The notes under the pieces: model-generated | The model's input: the letters and a program-made list of their open reading frames with translations, nothing else | Databases searched by the model: none | What the model was told of the DNA's origin: nothing | Sequence record: OR608733.1 | Length of the DNA stretch: 64,000 bases | Reading direction: 5' to 3' (one strand) | Made by a program: the position numbers and the translations under genes | Part shown: piece by piece, positions 2,453-54,262 of the stretch | Layout: each line of letters opens with the position of its first letter | Numbering within the stretch: the stretch's first letter is position 1

Positions 2453-2965
2453 TCATTTAATCAGCTTCATTACTAGAGGAACAGATAGACTTATGCCATT
2501 GGCCATTTTAGCTAGGCTATGATAGACATCGTCTGCTTCTTGATTATTGGTACAAGGTATAGAAATGGCATCACCATAGTAAGGACTGTAGTTAATACGG
2601 TCGCCATACACACCACTCACAAAACTATAATCTAATCCATCCGTAGTAGTCATAATAACTACAACATGATCATCCCCAACTATACCGGATTCTAAATCCT
2701 CACATAGTTCCAGTTTTTGTTGCACACCTCGTTGACAGATCCATACCTCACGGTATTGATGATGGGGATATGGATTACATGCTACATCATTTTCACTAAC
2801 GAAGTACATAGTCCCCCAGTTGTAAGACTGGAATTGGGTTGTTTGTTTGTGGGCTTCCCATACCTCCTCCATACAAAAGGTATGTTTGTTAACCCATAGA
2901 CCATCGTTATTAAGACTATCAACGATCCCATCACGGACACGTACTACACGGAGTGTTTTAGTCAT
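2453..2965 (-). CDS. hypothetical protein
   Basis: 170-aa ORF, 8-nt overlap with upstream gene. Confidence 0.8.
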   Translation of the reverse strand: MTKTLRVVRVRDGIVDSLNNDGLWVNKHTFCMEEVWEAHKQTTQFQSYNWGTMYFVSENDVACNPYPHHQYREVWICQRGVQQKLELCEDLESGIVGDDHVVVIMTTTDGLDYSFVSGVYGDRINYSPYYGDAISIPCTNNQEADDVYHSLAKMANGISLSVPLVMKLIK

Positions 2966-3398
2966 CTACGTAACCCTCATCAGATACATAAGTGCGTTCA
3001 GGGCTGAACACATATTTGATGTTATTAATTACAGCTGTGATATAAACCTGATATTCTTTTGAAATAGATTCCATCAGTTCAATAGATACGGAATTTGAAC
3101 TCTGAATAAGTTTATTTACTTTCTTTAGTTCATCAAATTCTAACCGACCGTATATTACACCAACATCTCTGAAACTGATAACTGGATAGTGTTTCCAAAT
3201 ATAACAATTCAGTTTACCAAGATGAATTACTTGAATTGTTTCATCGCACCATTGTTTCTTTTTCTTATTGTAGTATTCAACACGACGTTCGATGAAGACG
3301 CGAGTACCAGAAACAGAGGTGTACGCATTCAGTTCATAACCATACTTATGGTCAACGTTATTTGGATCTTGGCGCCATTTTGGAATGAATGCTTTCAT
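2958..3398 (-). CDS. hypothetical protein
   Basis: 146-aa ORF after terminator at 3426. Confidence 0.8.
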   Translation of the reverse strand: MKAFIPKWRQDPNNVDHKYGYELNAYTSVSGTRVFIERRVEYYNKKKKQWCDETIQVIHLGKLNCYIWKHYPVISFRDVGVIYGRLEFDELKKVNKLIQSSNSVSIELMESISKEYQVYITAVINNIKYVFSPERTYVSDEGYVDD

Positions 3399-3425
3399 TT
3401 GTATTTTCCTTTTTACGAAATAGAA

Positions 3426-3443
3426 GCCCTCCCGAAGGAGGGC
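3426..3443 (-). terminator. intrinsic terminator
   Basis: GCCCTCC-TTCG-GGAGGGC hairpin on - strand. Confidence 0.8.
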
Positions 3444-3456
3444 AATTATACCATTA

Positions 3457-3756
3457 TTAAATTACGAGTCTATATACTTCTTTTAATTTTTCACCAGGGG
3501 TAGCTAGATAATCTACATTATATTTAATAGCAATTACACCCACAAGTTCTTTTCTCAGTAGCTGTTCTACCTGATCGCATAATTTATCAATAGCTCCATC
3601 TTCTACATCCTCGTATAATGGATATTGACTATAAATATTATCAGGTGTAAGTACAGACAGTTTCAATTCCCCATCTTTACCAATGACTGGGTGATATGTC
3701 TGTTTAAGACCTTTACAATGATAGTGATAGGTAATGCGCTGTTGTTTAGTGGTCAT
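3457..3756 (-). CDS. hypothetical protein
   Basis: 99-aa ORF. Confidence 0.75.
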   Translation of the reverse strand: MTTKQQRITYHYHCKGLKQTYHPVIGKDGELKLSVLTPDNIYSQYPLYEDVEDGAIDKLCDQVEQLLRKELVGVIAIKYNVDYLATPGEKLKEVYRLVI

Positions 3757-4911: not shown

Positions 4912-5598
4912 TTAATGAATAACTGTTGCAGAAGGACGACATTTCATAGTTTTAAAAATGTCAGTAGGATAGATATTACCAGCTTGTCCGAAAGGTTTAT
5001 CGGCTAGAAGAAACTGCGGACAAACTGTTTGTAGATAACCACTATCAGTGGGTAGGAATCCTTCAATATCACTGATGAGAATTTGCCAGATGGGCAATTG
5101 GTTATAATAGTCATCCATATTGTAGTATGCGTGGAGTTTACCACCGAACCCATATACAAACTGATGAGTATCAATTAGACGAATACCAAATTTAGGTTGT
5201 CGTCCCATCCTTTGATCTTCTTCAAATGCGCTCAGTAAATCTGCAATCTCTACGCCACCCGTGATCTGTTTCACTTCTTTTAATTTTTCAAAAATGGCGT
5301 AAAAGGTATTTACTGCCGATTCCTTAGTAATGCAGGCAGTGATCACCAGTTCAGGAAAGAGTGGATCTTCTTTATTACATCCACACGTGTAATAAACAAC
5401 ATTGGAACCAATATCACCTTCTCGTTCAACCACGGCAAAAGGTTTTTTGGATAGTTTCATTTGCTTTTCAATTAACTGTCTGCTATTCTCACGAATAGAT
5501 TCATATTCGTGACTGGCCTTAAAAATAGGTGCTTTGTAATCTATCTCTTTTGGTTCTACTAGATCACTTGCCGATTTGATAACTAATGGATTACTCAT
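4912..5598 (-). CDS. hypothetical protein
   Basis: 228-aa ORF with AGGA RBS. Confidence 0.85.
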   Translation of the reverse strand: MSNPLVIKSASDLVEPKEIDYKAPIFKASHEYESIRENSRQLIEKQMKLSKKPFAVVEREGDIGSNVVYYTCGCNKEDPLFPELVITACITKESAVNTFYAIFEKLKEVKQITGGVEIADLLSAFEEDQRMGRQPKFGIRLIDTHQFVYGFGGKLHAYYNMDDYYNQLPIWQILISDIEGFLPTDSGYLQTVCPQFLLADKPFGQAGNIYPTDIFKTMKCRPSATVIH

Positions 5599-5626
5599 TG
5601 TATATTTCCTTTTCTTATATAAGAAA

Positions 5627-5646
5627 AGGGAGGTATTACCCTCCCT
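5627..5646 (-). terminator. intrinsic terminator
   Basis: AGGGAGG/CCTCCCT stem followed by a T run on - strand. Confidence 0.7.
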
Positions 5647-5980
5647 AATTAAGCATTAAATATTTAGGTTCAGTAGTGGCTCGGATCTTAGCAATAAGTG
5701 CTTTTTGATCACTAACCTTACTAATGGGATATTCTAATAAACGTAAATCCATGTCCCGATGTACTAAACCTAACATTGCCTTATTTTGATGACTATTATT
5801 ACGTAATGCAGCGATATGTTTATCAACTTCATTACTAACAGTCTTTGAAAGCCCTACTAAATACTTCCCAGTTGCAATGTGTTCAATAACATAAACACCT
5901 GCTCCAACTATTTCGCTTCTTTTCCCACGACCGTGCGAAGTACTTGACCAACTATAACACTTATCATCAACTATAAACAT
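5645..5980 (-). CDS. stand-alone, probably degenerate GIY-YIG domain protein
   Basis: GVYVIEHIATGKYLVGLS...H...L...H.N pattern; the catalytic Arg helix reads NEVDKH; no DNA-binding C-terminal domain. Confidence 0.65.
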   Translation of the reverse strand: MFIVDDKCYSWSSTSHGRGKRSEIVGAGVYVIEHIATGKYLVGLSKTVSNEVDKHIAALRNNSHQNKAMLGLVHRDMDLRLLEYPISKVSDQKALIAKIRATTEPKYLMLN

Positions 5981-6023
5981 GGTTAATTCCCGTCCTATAA
6001 CTATCTAATTGGACGGTCAAGTA

Positions 6024-6389
6024 TTAGCTACCAGTCCATGAATACTTATCATAAACTAACCACATTGAATGGATCTTATTGATGATATTGAAAATAGGTT
6101 CTTGGACATCTTCAAAATCACCTAGATCAGCTGCCAGATTGGCCATATATTGGAATAGCCGCTCAGTTGATACATCCACCAGATTGGCAAATGGAATACT
6201 GGCATATGGGATTTGCTTTAACATACCAAACTTATAAATTTTAGCAAACCATGCATCCAACATTGCAACATCTGCTTTAAACATCCAATAAGTTTCAGCT
6301 GGATATGTGCCGTCATGGATAGAGCAGAACAAATCACCAGTAATCGTTTCAACAAGCATTTCCACTTCAGCAGAATTAATTTCGATCAT
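6024..6389 (-). CDS. hypothetical protein
   Basis: 121-aa ORF. Confidence 0.8.
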   Translation of the reverse strand: MIEINSAEVEMLVETITGDLFCSIHDGTYPAETYWMFKADVAMLDAWFAKIYKFGMLKQIPYASIPFANLVDVSTERLFQYMANLAADLGDFEDVQEPIFNIINKIHSMWLVYDKYSWTGS

Positions 6390-14224: not shown

Positions 14225-14332
14225 TTATTTATATTTTTTCTTATGAGTGTGATAAATATAGCTAAATAGCATACCGATTGACATTGATACAGCTACCATA
14301 CCCACATAGAAAAGTTCATTACTAAGTTGCAT
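14225..14332 (-). CDS. 35-aa single-pass membrane peptide (not in ORF track)
   Basis: Hand-translated [35 protein letters not shown]; GAGG RBS; basic C-terminal tail. Confidence 0.65.
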
Positions 14333-14393: not shown

Positions 14394-14411
14394 GAGGACC
14401 CGAAGGTCCTC
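14394..14411 (-). terminator. intrinsic terminator closing the exported-protein operon
   Basis: GAGGACC-TTCG-GGTCCTC followed by TTTTT; a second hairpin TTTTAACCG/CGGTTAAAA follows immediately. Confidence 0.85.
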
Positions 14412-14414
14412 TAA

Positions 14415-14654
14415 TTATTTCTTATAACTCTCAGGGCATCCCATTTTGAGTTTGCCATCCTTTGGGTCTTCAGCGAATAATACTTCATCTGGACACTTCT
14501 TAACAGGAGTGTCCTTCGCCTTATCTTCCCATTCTACAACAGGCATTTCTAATTTCTTACGAAATTGATACGTATCATAAAGAACATACGTAATCATTCC
14601 CATAAGAGAGATTACCCATACCCATGCAACAATTAGGATGATTCTAGTTATCAT
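14415..14654 (-). CDS. small membrane-anchored protein with Cys pair
   Basis: N-terminal TM segment; KKCPDE...MGCPES. Confidence 0.75.
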   Translation of the reverse strand: MITRIILIVAWVWVISLMGMITYVLYDTYQFRKKLEMPVVEWEDKAKDTPVKKCPDEVLFAEDPKDGKLKMGCPESYKK

Positions 14655-15021
14655 ACAACTCCTCGCCGACTATATTGAAACACCCATTACTGAGTTTTTC
14701 AGTCAGCATCTCACCAAGATCACTTCCCTCGCTCTTTGCCAAAAGCTTAAGTGCGGGATCAGTGAGATTTTGGTATATTACATCGACATTATCCAATGCG
14801 ATATTAATAGCGAGTGCCTTATCACTCTGGTTTTTATCTATGGCAATGGATAGTTCATCTTGCAGTATTGCATACATCTCCAATGGCTCACCGCCATTAG
14901 TGTAGAATTGAACCATATTCTTTGCCAAGCTGTGCAGCACGTAGCAAGATGACACGGTTACGGGTTGTGCATTAACCGACATTGCTACCATAGTGATAAT
15001 GAGCGAGAAGACGTATTTCAT
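14644..15021 (-). CDS. exported helical protein, two-Cys family
   Basis: Signal peptide ending VNA; VTVSSC...NGCFNIVGEEL. Confidence 0.8.
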   Translation of the reverse strand: MKYVFSLIITMVAMSVNAQPVTVSSCYVLHSLAKNMVQFYTNGGEPLEMYAILQDELSIAIDKNQSDKALAINIALDNVDVIYQNLTDPALKLLAKSEGSDLGEMLTEKLSNGCFNIVGEELYDN

Positions 15022-15053
15022 CCTATTTTCCTTTTGAAAGTATTCGATATGAA

Positions 15054-15509
15054 TTAAATGAGTTCAACAATTACCATGTGAGTGAATTTCTCACCAATAT
15101 GCTTCATGCAGTAATTGCCATAATACCCGCTGATAAAAGCTGCCAGATTAGGAGTAGTCACATTGTAACCTTGACTACGGATATAATCATGGATCTCTTT
15201 ACTGTTAAGGTCATTATTGATTTTATTAAGACTATTGAATACGAATGTTAACGCAATCCAATTATTGGTATCCAACTCATCTTTGAGTTTAGCAGAGTTG
15301 TTGAGCATAAGCACACCAACTTCATCTGCGCTATGACCTTCACTCATTCGAAATACAGCTTGTTTAGTAATGGTTTCAACCATTGCACACGACTGCACAG
15401 TGAGTTGAACATCTTTTTTACCAATCTTGATTTCAGCCATTGCGGTATTGAACATGATACCGGTAATGGCAATGAGACCAGCGAAAGCTGCTGCAATTAC
15501 ATTTTTCAT
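15054..15509 (-). CDS. exported helical protein, two-Cys family
   Basis: Signal peptide ending AMA; LTVQSC...NYCMKHIGEKF. Confidence 0.8.
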   Translation of the reverse strand: MKNVIAAAFAGLIAITGIMFNTAMAEIKIGKKDVQLTVQSCAMVETITKQAVFRMSEGHSADEVGVLMLNNSAKLKDELDTNNWIALTFVFNSLNKINNDLNSKEIHDYIRSQGYNVTTPNLAAFISGYYGNYCMKHIGEKFTHMVIVELI

Positions 15510-15526
15510 TTTAAATCCTTCTTCAT

Positions 15527-15910
15527 TTATTTAATGGTAAGAATAGTAATTTTTTCAGGATTTACTGGAACTTTAATTTTAGATTTATGTTGGAGAAACT
15601 CAACAACCACCATAGACTTATCCATTTTATACACTTCACATACTTTGACAAGCCTATCTACTACGCAACCAATTTTACCGGCATTTTGAGAAAAGAAAGA
15701 TTTTGCTTTTCTAATAGCCTCGCGTTTCTCAAGCATTTCCATATGCATATTTTCAATATGTTTATCGCGTTGAACACGATTAAACTTACGCATATGTCGT
15801 TCGATCTTACTAATTTCAGAAGAGTGTAATGAATAAGCAGCAGCTTCTTTCAGTTTCTCATATACTTCCACTGCCATTACCACGTGATCATCTTCAAAAT
15901 TTCTTTTCAT
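15527..15910 (-). CDS. hypothetical protein, paralog of 40274-40876
   Basis: Shared M.RN...V.M..E.Y..L...I.RH.RK.N...IR.A..FF..N..KI. Confidence 0.8.
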   Translation of the reverse strand: MKRNFEDDHVVMAVEVYEKLKEAAAYSLHSSEISKIERHMRKFNRVQRDKHIENMHMEMLEKREAIRKAKSFFSQNAGKIGCVVDRLVKVCEVYKMDKSMVVVEFLQHKSKIKVPVNPEKITILTIK

Positions 15911-15923
15911 ATCTATGCCTTTT

Positions 15924-16718
15924 TTACTGTTTGATTAAATTTGACACTGCTTCTTGTTTACATTGAGTATTCATCCATAATGCAATGTCTTTGGGTTCTT
16001 GTCCAGTTTCCACCATATCGATAATGATACGGGTATTACGTTGTGCTTTCTCACGGGCATTTAACATATCAGGATCATTAATAATGAATTCCCTACCCAT
16101 AACTGGATCTAATCCAATATAAGCTTTAGATGCAATAGTTCTCACCATTGCTTCATATTGGTCACATCCACGTTCAGTTAATACAAGGTTATCTGCATTG
16201 GCACTACCGCCAAATAGCAAACCTAGGAATCCATAGAAAAAAGTGTGACGTATTGTCTTCCAACAAATACGCATCTCTTCATTTTTTGTATAAAGCTTTT
16301 CCCAATCAAACATTAAATAGAAACTTTCTTTTTGGATAGAAGGGTGTAACCAAATAGGTTTAATACTTACTTCAAGAAGTTTACTATTTGGATTTTTACC
16401 AATAAAGATAACTTCAACAATGGCTCGTGCTAAAGCATCTTTTTCTTTACCATTCCATCCAAATTTTATTTCATCAGCCGTGATATAAAGACGTATTCCG
16501 TCACCCACGTATTTGGGTAACCAAACAGCTTTACCTAGTTGCATTGGAACACTATTAGGGATCCCCCCAACCATCCAGGTAGCATTGGTGAAATGAATAG
16601 CGACATCATCATTTAACCACTTTAGAATAGCTGGCCTTACCCAGCTATCTACCAAATTACCACATGTCAATGCAGCTAGCATAGCCATGAGTATAATGAC
16701 AATATAAATACTAACCAT
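15924..16718 (-). CDS. membrane protein fused to a two-Cys exported-family domain
   Basis: N-terminal TM; internal signal-like segment ending ANA, then LTERGC...NTQCKQ. Confidence 0.75.
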   Translation of the reverse strand: MVSIYIVIILMAMLAALTCGNLVDSWVRPAILKWLNDDVAIHFTNATWMVGGIPNSVPMQLGKAVWLPKYVGDGIRLYITADEIKFGWNGKEKDALARAIVEVIFIGKNPNSKLLEVSIKPIWLHPSIQKESFYLMFDWEKLYTKNEEMRICWKTIRHTFFYGFLGLLFGGSANADNLVLTERGCDQYEAMVRTIASKAYIGLDPVMGREFIINDPDMLNAREKAQRNTRIIIDMVETGQEPKDIALWMNTQCKQEAVSNLIKQ

Positions 16719-16721
16719 ATT

Positions 16722-17081
16722 CTACTCCAAGTTAAATTTAGTACCAATTGCTTCAACACAGTTTTCAGCTAGCCTATCTAGAATAGCTCCATTGGTAAAT
16801 CCTTTTCGTTTATTTACGCGAATATCAACTAAGTTTAATTTAGCATATACGGTACCTGCATAGAACTCTAAGTCATCCATATCCTTACGAGAGATCATAT
16901 CTAACTGCATCATTATCTCAAATTGGGATAGGTTCTTATCATAAAGCTCAGTTGCTTTTTGTGAAAGATTTACTGCCACATTACATGATTTCTTAGTAAT
17001 ACCCACTTCTACAGCGTGGGCAGGCTGACATGCAATGGACAGGATTGGCAGGAAAAGGAATAATAGCCAATTCTTAAGCAT
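16722..17081 (-). CDS. exported helical protein, two-Cys family
   Basis: Signal peptide ending QPAHA; ITKKSC...ENCVEAIGTKF. Confidence 0.8.
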   Translation of the reverse strand: MLKNWLLFLFLPILSIACQPAHAVEVGITKKSCNVAVNLSQKATELYDKNLSQFEIMMQLDMISRKDMDDLEFYAGTVYAKLNLVDIRVNKRKGFTNGAILDRLAENCVEAIGTKFNLE

Positions 17082-17093
17082 GTTGTACCTCCA

Positions 17094-17501
17094 TTATTTT
17101 AGAGTAAGTGGTTTTGCTTCAAACGCACCTGCCGCTACACAACGCTGGAAATAACCATCAATGATGAATTTCTCAGGAGTGGTCTTATAGACTTTAGCAG
17201 CATTTGTTGCACGTGGCAAACTTGCCTCAATTGCCATTTTATCTACCTTAGACCATAGGTAAAATAGACCAGTGAGTTCTTCAACTTTAGACTGGTTGGT
17301 CTTTAGATCTTTAGTGTTATTAAGGATATAATGAATCCTTTCATAAGTCTTCATTTGCACTTCAGTTACAGATGCACCTTTTACAAACAATTCATCTGCC
17401 TGTTTTACAAACTCGATGCATGAATCACGATTAGTGTACATGACAGCCGAGTTAGCAGTGATAGTTACAATAGACAACATAAATACAATTACATATTTCA
17501 T
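17094..17501 (-). CDS. exported helical protein, two-Cys family
   Basis: Signal peptide MKYVIVFMLSIVTITANS; TNRDSC...QRCVAAG. Confidence 0.8.
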   Translation of the reverse strand: MKYVIVFMLSIVTITANSAVMYTNRDSCIEFVKQADELFVKGASVTEVQMKTYERIHYILNNTKDLKTNQSKVEELTGLFYLWSKVDKMAIEASLPRATNAAKVYKTTPEKFIIDGYFQRCVAAGAFEAKPLTLK

Positions 17502-17527
17502 AATGAATTACCTCAAAATTAATTTTA

Positions 17528-17791
17528 TTAACTATTGGTTTCACCACGAGTATTGAATTCTAAATCCAATACAACTTTAGTAAATTCTTCCAGTGCACCA
17601 CCCTCGTAGATGAGTGGGTCACTGTCACCCCGGTACATGCTACCTACCGGTACTTGACCACGAAACACCATCAGCATATCGTTTTTTACTATGACATGAT
17701 GTTCATCCCCGACAGCAATGTCTTGGATGTGTCTCCAGCGTTCACGCAGTAAGCTGCAAGCGCACCATACGGATTTCAAACGTTCAGTCAT
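17528..17791 (-). CDS. hypothetical early protein
   Basis: First ORF after the promoter at 17825. Confidence 0.8.
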   Translation of the reverse strand: MTERLKSVWCACSLLRERWRHIQDIAVGDEHHVIVKNDMLMVFRGQVPVGSMYRGDSDPLIYEGGALEEFTKVVLDLEFNTRGETNS

Positions 17792-17824
17792 TGTATTGCC
17801 CTCTTGGTTATTAAATTCATATTT

Positions 17825-17856
17825 GTAATATAGCTTTTTAAATAGTTTAAATACAA
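17825..17856 (-). promoter_or_regulatory. phiKZ-type early promoter
   Basis: TTGTAT-N18-TATATTAC. Confidence 0.85.
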
Positions 17857-17871
17857 AAAAAGATAAATAAA

Positions 17872-17891
17872 ACCCTCCCCGAAGGGAGGGT
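17872..17891 (-). terminator. intrinsic terminator
   Basis: ACCCTCCC-TTCG-GGGAGGGT followed by T run. Confidence 0.85.
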
Positions 17892-27412: not shown

Positions 27413-27670
27413 CTATTTATTTACACAGATTAGAGTATGTTCTACTTTACTAGTACTAGAAGAAAAATAACGTAATAGAACACCATCACTGATTTTTACA
27501 GTCTCTACATTATTACGAATAGCACTTGCTTTAGCTAGTTTTTGAATGCGCTCAATCGCGCTAAAACAAGTAGCCATGTCAGAGAACTCAGCGGTTGACT
27601 GCGATGCACCATTGGCTTGATAACCAGCGATACTGATACTACTAAAAAGAATTGCTAAAGTTGCATTCAT
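27413..27670 (-). CDS. small exported/membrane protein with Cys pair
   Basis: Hydrophobic N-terminus; F.D...C.....C. Confidence 0.7.
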   Translation of the reverse strand: MNATLAILFSSISIAGYQANGASQSTAEFSDMATCFSAIERIQKLAKASAIRNNVETVKISDGVLLRYFSSSTSKVEHTLICVNK

Positions 27671-29975: not shown

Positions 29976-30344
29976 TTATTTTACAACCACAGCTTTACCG
30001 TAGTTGTTATCCATACAGGTTTTAAATGATGTAACGTATGCATCACGTGGGCTTTGTCTACGTGAATACACAACGTGCACCTCTTTAATTGCTGCTGGGA
30101 GAACATTGTAAAGAACGTTATCTTTGTTCTTCACGCCGTACCCTTTTAGGGATCGTAGGTTTTCTTCCCATTGTAAAATGGGTGTTTTACGCTGACGTGC
30201 TTCTGCTGTGGCATGTGCTATAAGTGCAACACCATTACAGTAATTCTCGTCAACTACCAACGATGCAGCTAGTGGGTTTGATACGTATAACAACGTACTT
30301 AATACGGCCACTAACTTCATTACGTGTGTTAAACATTGCATCAC
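29976..30344 (-). CDS. exported helical protein, two-Cys family (outlying member)
   Basis: Signal peptide ending LAA; VDENYC...KTCMD. Confidence 0.75.
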   Translation of the reverse strand: MMQCLTHVMKLVAVLSTLLYVSNPLAASLVVDENYCNGVALIAHATAEARQRKTPILQWEENLRSLKGYGVKNKDNVLYNVLPAAIKEVHVVYSRRQSPRDAYVTSFKTCMDNNYGKAVVVK

Positions 30345-53162: not shown

Positions 53163-53525
53163 TTAGAATCCAATATAATCTAGGAACCCATGGTAATCGA
53201 ATGTTCGTGTTGGGATACTTGTATCCGAAAAGAACGTATTTATTTGTTTAGCTAATTCAGTATGGTGATGTGAATTATCTTTGTTGATCTTAGTAACCAC
53301 TTTCTCATCAAAGAAATAGGTTACGCACATATTTAGTGGTTTATCTATATTGATTTCAACAACTACCTTACGAACCGTATCCTCAGACAAGAGTGTACAC
53401 TTAGCGCCCCACGGTGAAACCTCTATTTTAATATCTACATGAGGCTTGAGGTTATCATGATATTTCGTGAGTTCCTTCAATACATCATCCATCGTTTGGA
53501 TGAGCTTTATATTGGTAATATTCAT
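53163..53525 (-). CDS. hypothetical protein
   Basis: 120-aa ORF. Confidence 0.8.
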   Translation of the reverse strand: MNITNIKLIQTMDDVLKELTKYHDNLKPHVDIKIEVSPWGAKCTLLSEDTVRKVVVEINIDKPLNMCVTYFFDEKVVTKINKDNSHHHTELAKQINTFFSDTSIPTRTFDYHGFLDYIGF

Positions 53526-54262
53526 TATAACCCCTCATAAATATCCTTTCGTTTTGGATTTATGCCTGCAACCTTGCCTTTACTATTATCGATGTAACAA
53601 AGGTATTCATCACAAATGGTAGTCTTTACAAAAGGAATCAATTGGTTTAGTTCCAATAGAGTGTACTCTTTACCCAAATATTTACACATCTGGGTCAATG
53701 GACTACACATCACATTATAAATTCCCTTAGTATTTTTTAGAGAGAGGTATTCGCCATCAATATCTCTATCATTATTTATCATGTAAATATCACGAATAGG
53801 ATAATTATCTTTTAATGGTCCGTTACCAAACTTAACACCATGTACACCATTGGGTCCATTTAGTAGATAATAACCAGTTGGCACAGACCAATATGTGGTG
53901 CCTTTAAATCCTGAAAGTAAACCATACGGCTCATGATAATCAGAAGTAAAGCATTGTTCATCATTACAGATGACTTCTTGATACATCGAATAATTAACAA
54001 GAATCTGTTTAGTTGGATCACTTGGTTTAACTAATGGAATAACTGAATATTCTGGATAACTAGTCCATCCGCAACTACCAAGTCCAGATTGTTGGTCGAA
54101 GTTACATGGAGCAATTCGCGGAGTATGATTAGAGTAGAATAGTGGTACACCATAAAAAGCAAGTGGTTCGTAATTAACACTAGCTTTAGTACACATGCCG
54201 ATACTAATCAGAAATACCGCACAAAATACACGCATCGATAATTTAAACATCAGTGCATCCAC
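53525..54262 (-). CDS. Cys-rich exported protein
   Basis: Signal-like N-terminus ending TKA; four close Cys pairs in the mature part. Confidence 0.75.
   Translation of the reverse strand: MDALMFKLSMRVFCAVFLISIGMCTKASVNYEPLAFYGVPLFYSNHTPRIAPCNFDQQSGLGSCGWTSYPEYSVIPLVKPSDPTKQILVNYSMYQEVICNDEQCFTSDYHEPYGLLSGFKGTTYWSVPTGYYLLNGPNGVHGVKFGNGPLKDNYPIRDIYMINNDRDIDGEYLSLKNTKGIYNVMCSPLTQMCKYLGKEYTLLELNQLIPFVKTTICDEYLCYIDNSKGKVAGINPKRKDIYEGL

Follow-up and report, generated by a model that had tools for sequence, protein, structure and literature searches.

The DNA examined here is a stretch of 64,000 nucleotides of sequence record OR608733.1 (the window), and the element in question is a minus-strand operon of small genes belonging to a phiKZ-type Pseudomonas jumbo phage. 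Over its 3.5 kb, the operon region matches Pseudomonas phage 6B, in which its coordinates are the same, with 100% identity and phiKZ with 99.9% identity; in the phiKZ record, the genes appear as PHIKZ246.1, 247, 248, 249, 250, 251, 252, and 253, all annotated as hypothetical. An initial annotation of the sequence had described a family of exported, disulfide-stapled helical proteins composed of four signal-bearing open reading frames (ORFs) of this operon, the C-terminal domain of PHIKZ249 (gp249), and a sixth member outside the operon at position 29976 (PHIKZ229); all were found on the minus strand exactly where they had been placed (Table 1), together with the promoter-to-terminator arrangement that had been proposed for the unit.

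Table 1. Features of the PHIKZ246.1-253 unit and associated elements (positions are those of the 64-kb window)
Feature	Position	Strand	Remarks
Intrinsic terminator closing the upstream unit (after PHIKZ246)	17872..17891	-	8-bp G+C-rich stem, 4-nt loop, T-run
Core of early-promoter-like element, exact 9-mer CTATATTAC	17825..17833	-	T-rich stretch immediately upstream
PHIKZ246.1, 87 aa	17528..17791	-	First gene of unit; no export signal; nonmember
PHIKZ247, 135 aa, exported-type two-Cys helical protein	17094..17501	-	C28, C121
PHIKZ248, 119 aa, founding and most widespread member	16722..17081	-	C33, C108; C18 inside signal
PHIKZ249, 264 aa, two-part membrane protein	15924..16718	-	C185, C253 in family-type C-domain
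PHIKZ249 internal signal-like segment, residues 149-175	16194-16274	-	From hydropathy and inspection
PHIKZ249 family-type C-terminal domain, residues 176-264	15927-16193	-	From profile comparison; contains both Cys
PHIKZ250, 127 aa, nonmember inside unit	15527..15910	-	No export signal
PHIKZ251, 151 aa, exported-type family member	15054..15509	-	C41, C134
PHIKZ252, 125 aa, exported-type family member	14644..15021	-	C26, C114
PHIKZ253, 79 aa, last gene of unit, nonmember	14415..14654	-	N-terminal transmembrane segment and tail with two Cys
Hairpin terminator adjoining PHIKZ253 stop codon	14393..14412	-	8-bp stem, 4-nt loop, T-run on coding strand
PHIKZ229, 122 aa, unlinked exported-type two-Cys protein	29976..30344	-	C36, C110
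Extended elements, first base of 8-mer TATATTAC	620, 11483, 14168, 17832, 20903, 21335, 29282, 44809, 58658	-	Recurrence upstream of genes

Export signals were judged by inspection and by hydropathy (Kyte-Doolittle, 11-residue windows). As the initial annotation had proposed, the members carry hydrophobic segments (11-residue maxima of 2.4 to 3.1) that are followed by a small-x-small cleavage-type site, and the full layout of a positive n-region, a hydrophobic h-region, and a small-x-small site is present in five of the six signals, the putative site of gp229 being weaker; the best cleavage site of gp247 is less canonical than those of the other members. Each mature domain contains exactly two cysteines, one located 8 to 16 residues past the putative cleavage site and the other 11 to 17 residues before the end, and both the cysteine positions and the five-residue strings ahead of the first cysteine are as originally quoted, as is the glycine-containing tail past the last cysteine of gp248, gp251, and gp252. 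Across the window, the combination of a signal and two cysteines is concentrated in the PHIKZ246.1-253 unit. The pair is invariant in all nine gp248 relatives, in all 12 rows of an alignment of the gp248, gp251, and gp252 groups, in all five rows of the gp247 alignment (three distinct lineages), and in all six gp229 orthologues, which span six genera; all family cysteines are likewise retained in L007, a Logan contig that carries the same operon at 60 to 96% amino acid identity. This conservation, together with the positions of the two residues in the helices of the models described below, suggests that the pair forms an end-to-end disulfide.

Pairwise BLASTP comparisons among the paralogues returned nothing significant and were therefore replaced by profile searches. 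A hidden Markov model (HMM) built from gp248 orthologues only, with signals removed, and run against 430 other ORFs ranked gp251, gp252, and a second copy from phage Psa21 first, at E values between 7.8e-6 and 1.3e-3, with the next unrelated ORF at 0.12. Within that range, gp251 scored 1.2e-4 and its L007 orthologue 7.8e-6, and gp252 scored 1e-3 and its L007 orthologue 1.3e-4; a gp252 HMM recovered the L007 gp251 orthologue at an E value of 8.5e-9, the reverse searches agreed, phmmer on the mature domains also supported homology of gp248, gp251, and gp252, and gp251 matched the PHROG to which gp248 belongs (PHROG 15284) at 2.7e-4. In hhalign comparisons, gp248 orthologues aligned with the gp251 group at a probability of 84% (E value, 7.5e-6; 94 columns) and gp252 aligned with the gp251 group at 62% (E value, 7.4e-5; 100 columns), while unrelated control families gave less than 1%. 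At the level of sequence profiles, these results establish common descent for gp248, gp251, and gp252. The C-terminal domain of gp249, once the orthologue from L018 (a more distant metagenomic relative) had been added, aligned with this core family from end to end (57.5% probability; E value, 1e-4; 80 columns), with both cysteines in register and controls again below 1%, and is probably homologous to the other three. We regard gp251 and gp252, and probably the gp249 C-domain as well, as diverged duplicates of gp248. The diversified family of the initial annotation can thus be upheld by sequence for gp248, gp251, and gp252 and, probably, for the gp249 C-domain; gp247, which aligns collinearly with a PA1C/PS119XW protein (21% identity, both cysteines conserved), and gp229 appear to share only the architecture and the modeled fold, their common descent with the core being unproven.

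The mature domain of gp248 was modeled with AlphaFold2 from a 12-row alignment. The model (predicted local distance difference test [pLDDT] score, 93.1; predicted template modeling [pTM] score, 0.83) is built of five helices flanked by a short strand at either end; C33 lies in helix 1 and C108 in helix 5, at a distance of about six residues from the terminal strands in each case. The general plan of the family would be a domain of approximately 90 to 130 residues in which the short C-terminal strand pairs with the N-terminal one. The model of gp247 (pLDDT, 74.3; pTM, 0.70) has its elements in the same order, and its best non-self fold matches are family members. Both models are helical, as had been predicted.

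Among the Foldseek matches of the gp248 model that we examined (the best 50 of 98 from the PDB and the best 50 of 181 from a viral library), the six top-ranking PDB chains are all saposin-like, comprising two chains each of the hookworm protein Na-SLP-1, saposin A, and saposin C. Their template modeling (TM) scores range from 0.51 to 0.69 and their probabilities from 0.57 to 0.92; they cover 73 to 92 of 96 residues, with a root mean square deviation (rmsd) of 2.9 to 4.1 for the best chains, and the matches ranked beneath them are poor. In the viral library, orthologues came first, followed by gp251-like, gp249-length, gp229-like, and gp247-like proteins and the second Psa21 copy, and family-type models matched gp248 at TM scores of 0.62 to 0.78. 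The upper end of this range is occupied by the PS119XW orthologue of gp229, the accession of which was confirmed (TM score, 0.78; probability, 1.00; rmsd, 2.5; 100 columns), and a 264-residue model, A0A494WC04, gave a TM score of 0.72 and an rmsd of 1.7; A0A494WC04 (264 amino acids) and A0A494W8Q1 (151 amino acids) were tentatively equated with gp249 and gp251, respectively, by their exact lengths. As far as the models go, the gp248-family fold resembles that of the saposins.

Saposin-like proteins such as human saposins A and C and Na-SLP-1 are compact bundles of four or five helices and approximately 80 to 95 residues, and a disulfide that staples the N-terminal part of the domain to the C-terminal part is a hallmark of saposins. 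The gp248 family would share the bundle and the disulfide between the first and last helices but differs in having two cysteines and one predicted disulfide where saposins have six cysteines and three disulfides, in the additional paired terminal strands, which saposins lack, and in its predicted location, the bacterial periplasm rather than the lysosome or a secretion granule. This likeness invites the proposal that the domains handle lipids as saposins do, binding or extracting lipids of the membrane or envelope molecules linked to lipid. They would do so on the periplasmic side, which may include the lumen of the lipid-bounded early infection vesicle, and would remodel or destabilize membranes early in infection. 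The six best solved-structure matches, the terminal staple, and the possible lipid anchor of gp248 considered below are all compatible with such activity, as is the existence of a lipid-bounded early vesicle in phiKZ-like phages (bioRxiv 10.1101/2023.09.20.558163 and 10.1101/2024.03.24.586471). We nevertheless consider lipid handling unlikely: the Foldseek E values are nonsignificant, the Pfam saposin models gave no match at an E value of ≤1 with the proteins or ≤10 with 12 aligned members, two of the three saposin disulfides have no counterpart, small five-helix bundles can converge, and the main text of the early-vesicle preprint does not name the family proteins.

Two members depart from the simple plan of a signal and a soluble domain. 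The cleavable signal assigned to gp248 does contain a standard cleavage-type site, but a cysteine within the signal (C18), in a lipobox-like position, precedes that site by five residues. Cysteine occupies this position in 10 of 12 full-length orthologues and is lacking in two, and it is preceded by Gly, Ala, or Ser in 8 of the 10. Rather than being soluble in the periplasm, gp248 may on these grounds be a lipoprotein, and both processing routes are possible. Llp of phage T5 and Cor of phages phi80 and N15 are small superinfection-exclusion lipoproteins whose action on the envelope is exerted from within the periplasm, and the lipobox-like cysteine of gp248 recalls them; they block a specific outer-membrane receptor, however, and no sequence or fold match between these proteins and the gp248 family was returned.

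The second departure, gp249, comprises a hydrophobic N terminus (approximately residues 3 to 19), a domain of about 130 residues for which no relatives were detectable, an internal signal-like segment, and the family-type C-domain. As read from its sequence, gp249 is a genuine two-domain membrane protein, since the fused architecture is retained both in L007 (positions 2782 to 3567) and in the more distant L018 (positions 5322 to 6080); the distribution of charge suggests that the loop ahead of the second hydrophobic segment is cytoplasmic and the C-domain periplasmic. This layout, in which the membrane separates the two domains, is suggestive of a transmembrane coupling device. A nested gene encoding the C-domain separately was considered and rejected, given that the internal methionine has a weak and badly spaced ribosome-binding site and that the fusion is kept in two relatives.

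The same features bear on whether the proteins are exported at all. Their hydrophobic N termini might be anchors or targeting helices, with the proteins acting in the cytoplasm or on the surface of the vesicle and the cysteine pair put to another use, such as metal binding. That the signals were judged by inspection, that the first hydrophobic segment of gp249 lacks a positive N-region, and that gp253, encoded by the same unit, is a plain membrane protein would all suit a nonexported family. We find this very unlikely in the face of five signals with the full tripartite layout and a small-x-small site, of two cysteines placed in the first and last helices beside paired terminal strands, which is the pattern of exported disulfide proteins, and of the name "Lipoprotein" that one source independently gives to gp248.

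The PHIKZ246.1-253 genes are bounded by an early-promoter-type element and a hairpin terminator (positions 17833 to 14393, minus strand), and a ribosome-binding site is present ahead of each. The 9-mer CTATATTAC at 17833 to 17825, 40 bases downstream of the hairpin of the upstream unit (17891 to 17872), occurs as five exact copies in the window, all on the coding (minus) strand, compared with 1.3 expected. An extended AT- and T-rich element containing it recurs at nine sites, each 40 to 60 nucleotides upstream of a start codon, and these sites map the candidate early-type promoters of the 64-kb stretch; the nine elements end in TATATTAC and frequently lie just past a hairpin terminator. Early promoters of phiKZ have been described as carrying a T-rich motif ahead of an extended -10 box (PMC8244752); the element upstream of PHIKZ246.1 fits this pattern, and the upstream hairpin agrees with the phiKZ terminator type (PMC10914365). 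These features strongly indicate a single transcription unit with a candidate early promoter. With respect to the proteins, the orthologue of gp248 in the near-identical phage Churi, the one family protein for which early detection is on record, was found by proteomics 15 min after infection (PMC11849849), and PHIKZ247 to PHIKZ252 are among the phage proteins in size exclusion chromatography-mass spectrometry (SEC-MS) tables of infected cells (PMC10449902).

Early expression is one of the considerations that count against a role in lysis timing, in which the exported domains would sense periplasmic events and delay or tune lysis in the manner of T4-type periplasmic antiholins. A study of the phiKZ lysis cassette described slower lysis at high multiplicity and suggested a lysis-inhibition system (PMC12894885), and gp249, in which an exported domain is joined to a membrane-spanning part that has a further domain of its own, could be imagined as part of one. 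The operon is, however, far from the lysis cassette (gp141 to gp144), early rather than late expression is indicated, and the phiKZ holin has its large soluble domain in the cytoplasm (PMC12894885), which leaves little for a periplasmic protein to act on; we therefore rate control of lysis as highly improbable.

The family genes are accessory, and none is required for plaque formation on the laboratory host. In a transposon study of phiKZ, a viable insertion was reportedly isolated in orf252, and orf184 to orf304 are said to be largely nonessential; the tables of that study contain 4 to 33 insertion sites in each of PHIKZ246.1 to PHIKZ253.1 and in PHIKZ229, compared with almost none in the neighboring essential gene PHIKZ228, and it is on these insertion counts and the viable orf252 insertion that we base the accessory status of the genes.

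Orthologues of gp248 were found in phiPA3, Phabio, PA1C/PS119XW, Psa21, D6, and 201phi2-1; all Pseudomonas phiKZ-like genera that were examined have one, and none was found outside the phiKZ-like phages of Pseudomonas. An exhaustive HMMER search of 1.84 billion representative proteins with gp248 returned nine relatives only, a number too small for a deep alignment to be built, and because the protein was found in these phages and nowhere else in that collection, it is likely to be adapted to the envelope of Pseudomonas. When gp251 and gp248 were used in word-indexed protein searches, close relatives alone were returned, and tblastn searches with gp247 and gp249 gave matches only within the phiKZ species group. 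Successive genes with a signal and two cysteines occur in PA1C (three), Psa21 (two), and the metagenomic relative L018 (three); in phage 6B, no further members were found at positions 64001 to 114000 and 227852 to 277851, the intervening positions 114001 to 227851 having been left out of the search. Between phiKZ and L007, the ratio of nonsynonymous to synonymous substitution rates (dN/dS) is 0.03 to 0.23 at saturated dS, and the operon genes are constrained and under purifying selection rather than fast-evolving. Many short partial proteins labeled Klebsiella pneumoniae (P0003, P0006 to P0009, P0031, P0032, P0044, P0045, and others), from contigs of 210 to 635 bp, are 86 to 93% identical to phiKZ proteins where identity was reported, and they seem to be phage reads caught up in bacterial assemblies, not genes of Klebsiella.

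The initial annotation had linked the family to T4 Spackle, the product of gene 61.3, a small periplasmic protein that is made early, has a signal peptide, a mainly helical structure, and a disulfide, and inhibits the tail lysozyme. Both are phage encoded and small, with a signal, helical structure, and a disulfide (predicted in the present case), and they differ in that the gp248 family is multicopy, with one copy fused to a membrane protein and one possibly lipid anchored. The proposed link was not borne out: Spackle appeared in no sequence match, had no Pfam, NCBIfam, or PHROG connection to the family, and was absent from the best 50 of 98 PDB matches and the best 50 of 181 viral-library matches, so that the analogy is one of lifestyle only. 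A Spackle-type form of superinfection exclusion, with each paralogue inhibiting the tail cell-wall enzyme of a different competing phage, would account for the early-type promoter, the export signal, the small helical domain with its single predicted disulfide, and the existence of several diverged copies with different surfaces, and a function in competition predicts the dispensability of the genes on a laboratory host. It is weakened by the fold searches, in which saposin-like chains and not Spackle ranked best, and a little, as is the alternative role as envelope sensors that the initial annotation had offered, by the strong purifying selection (dN/dS, 0.03 to 0.16), with no rapid diversification between phiKZ and its 60 to 96% identical relative; no partner is known, and we hold the idea to be distinctly unlikely.

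The Rap/Tai4-type arrays of bacteria are tandem small, helical, disulfide-containing periplasmic immunity proteins, each of which neutralizes a different incoming type VI cell-wall enzyme, and they resemble the phage operon in being tandem sets of paralogous small helical disulfide proteins; in contrast to the early phage genes described here, they are bacterial genes located beside effectors, and none was found among the fold or sequence matches. The family profile matched none of 177,635 distinct solved-structure sequences at an E value of ≤0.1, the best being unrelated chains at 0.23, and the family had no match in Pfam, NCBIfam, or PADLOC. The record of phage U5 (MT995928) names gp247, gp248, and gp249 "MazF family toxin-antitoxin system protein," "putative DNA methylase," and "putative methyltransferase," respectively, and none of these names is supported by Pfam, NCBIfam, or PADLOC.

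We suggest that the operon is best explained as a whole, in a reading that we favor with modest confidence, as an early unit encoding exported, disulfide-stapled, saposin-like domains that have diversified as binders of envelope components. Synthesis of the proteins within the first minutes of infection would be followed by Sec-dependent export, and in the oxidizing periplasm the two cysteines would be joined in a disulfide, stapling one end of the bundle to the other; gp248 may additionally be anchored to lipid through its lipobox-like cysteine, and gp249 would link one family-type domain to a protein embedded in the membrane, the second domain of which lies across the membrane from it. The copies would then serve as compact binding modules, located either in the periplasm itself or at the membrane surfaces that face it. 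Their predicted pI values extend from 4.2 to 9.4, and their surfaces are widely different; each copy may bind a different lipid or protein of the envelope, and our best guess is that the infected-cell envelope is thereby conditioned or protected, for example, against secondary attack.

A number of our own observations weigh against this proposal. The export signals and cleavage sites were read by inspection, and the disulfide was deduced from conservation and helix positions. The gp247 model is of moderate quality, with a best pLDDT of 74 and values of 52 to 59 for the other four models, and neither gp247 (hhalign probability, 3.9%; E value, 0.011) nor gp229 (0.2%) has a detectable significant sequence link to the core family. 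The saposin-like matches, with Foldseek E values of 0.5 to 1.2, denote likeness and not homology, and low dN/dS values are unlike those of an arms race.

In the literature that was searched, none of the genes encoding gp246.1 to gp253 or gp229 has an assigned function, a comparative survey of jumbo phages does not mention exported, lipoprotein, or disulfide families, and no paper linking saposin-like folds to exported phage proteins was found. The gp248 family, its fold, and its multicopy organization are new forms of something already known, namely, small exported early phage proteins. Work on phiKZ-like phages has centered on the cytoplasm, including the phage nucleus, the early vesicle, the ribosome, and RNA polymerases, and our analysis indicates that the envelope, too, receives a conserved group of six related phage domains, probably early in infection. 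The family therefore offers an entry point to the periplasmic action of a nucleus-forming phage, be it competitor exclusion, envelope protection, or membrane remodeling, and would add a bacterial-virus example of a saposin-like, end-stapled helical bundle. A bolder claim seems to us rather improbable, namely, that this is the first family of saposin fold and membrane activity in a bacterial virus and that a nucleus-forming jumbo phage thereby delivers several Sec-exported, disulfide-stapled modules that bind lipid, within minutes of infection, to the periplasmic side of host membranes, possibly including the lumen of the lipid vesicle in which the injected genome is initially enclosed, where they would remodel or open membranes.

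Several features of the operon and its surroundings deserve mention. The gene for gp246.1 is missing from the diverged relative L007 (positions 1861 to 1994), in which the gap between the gp246 and gp247 orthologues is 133 nucleotides. The best-conserved gene of the operon is that encoding gp253 (96% identity to L007), and between the operon hairpin and the next terminator lies gp253.1 (14225 to 14332), a hydrophobic peptide of 35 residues. In phiKZ, PA1C, Phabio, and a metagenomic relative, the exported family is followed by small single-pass membrane proteins with a cysteine pair in the tail, with copies at 14415 to 14654 of the window (gp253), 6369 to 6539 of L006, 5351 to 5506 of L004, and 7545 to 7814 of L018. 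Elsewhere on the minus strand of the window, an ORF of 85 residues (27413 to 27670) with a signal-like N terminus and two cysteines, C35 and C82, near the ends of its mature part is a candidate exported disulfide protein with no sequence link to the family, and an ORF of 241 residues (53525 to 54250) with a signal-like N terminus and ten cysteines is likely to encode an exported or envelope protein.

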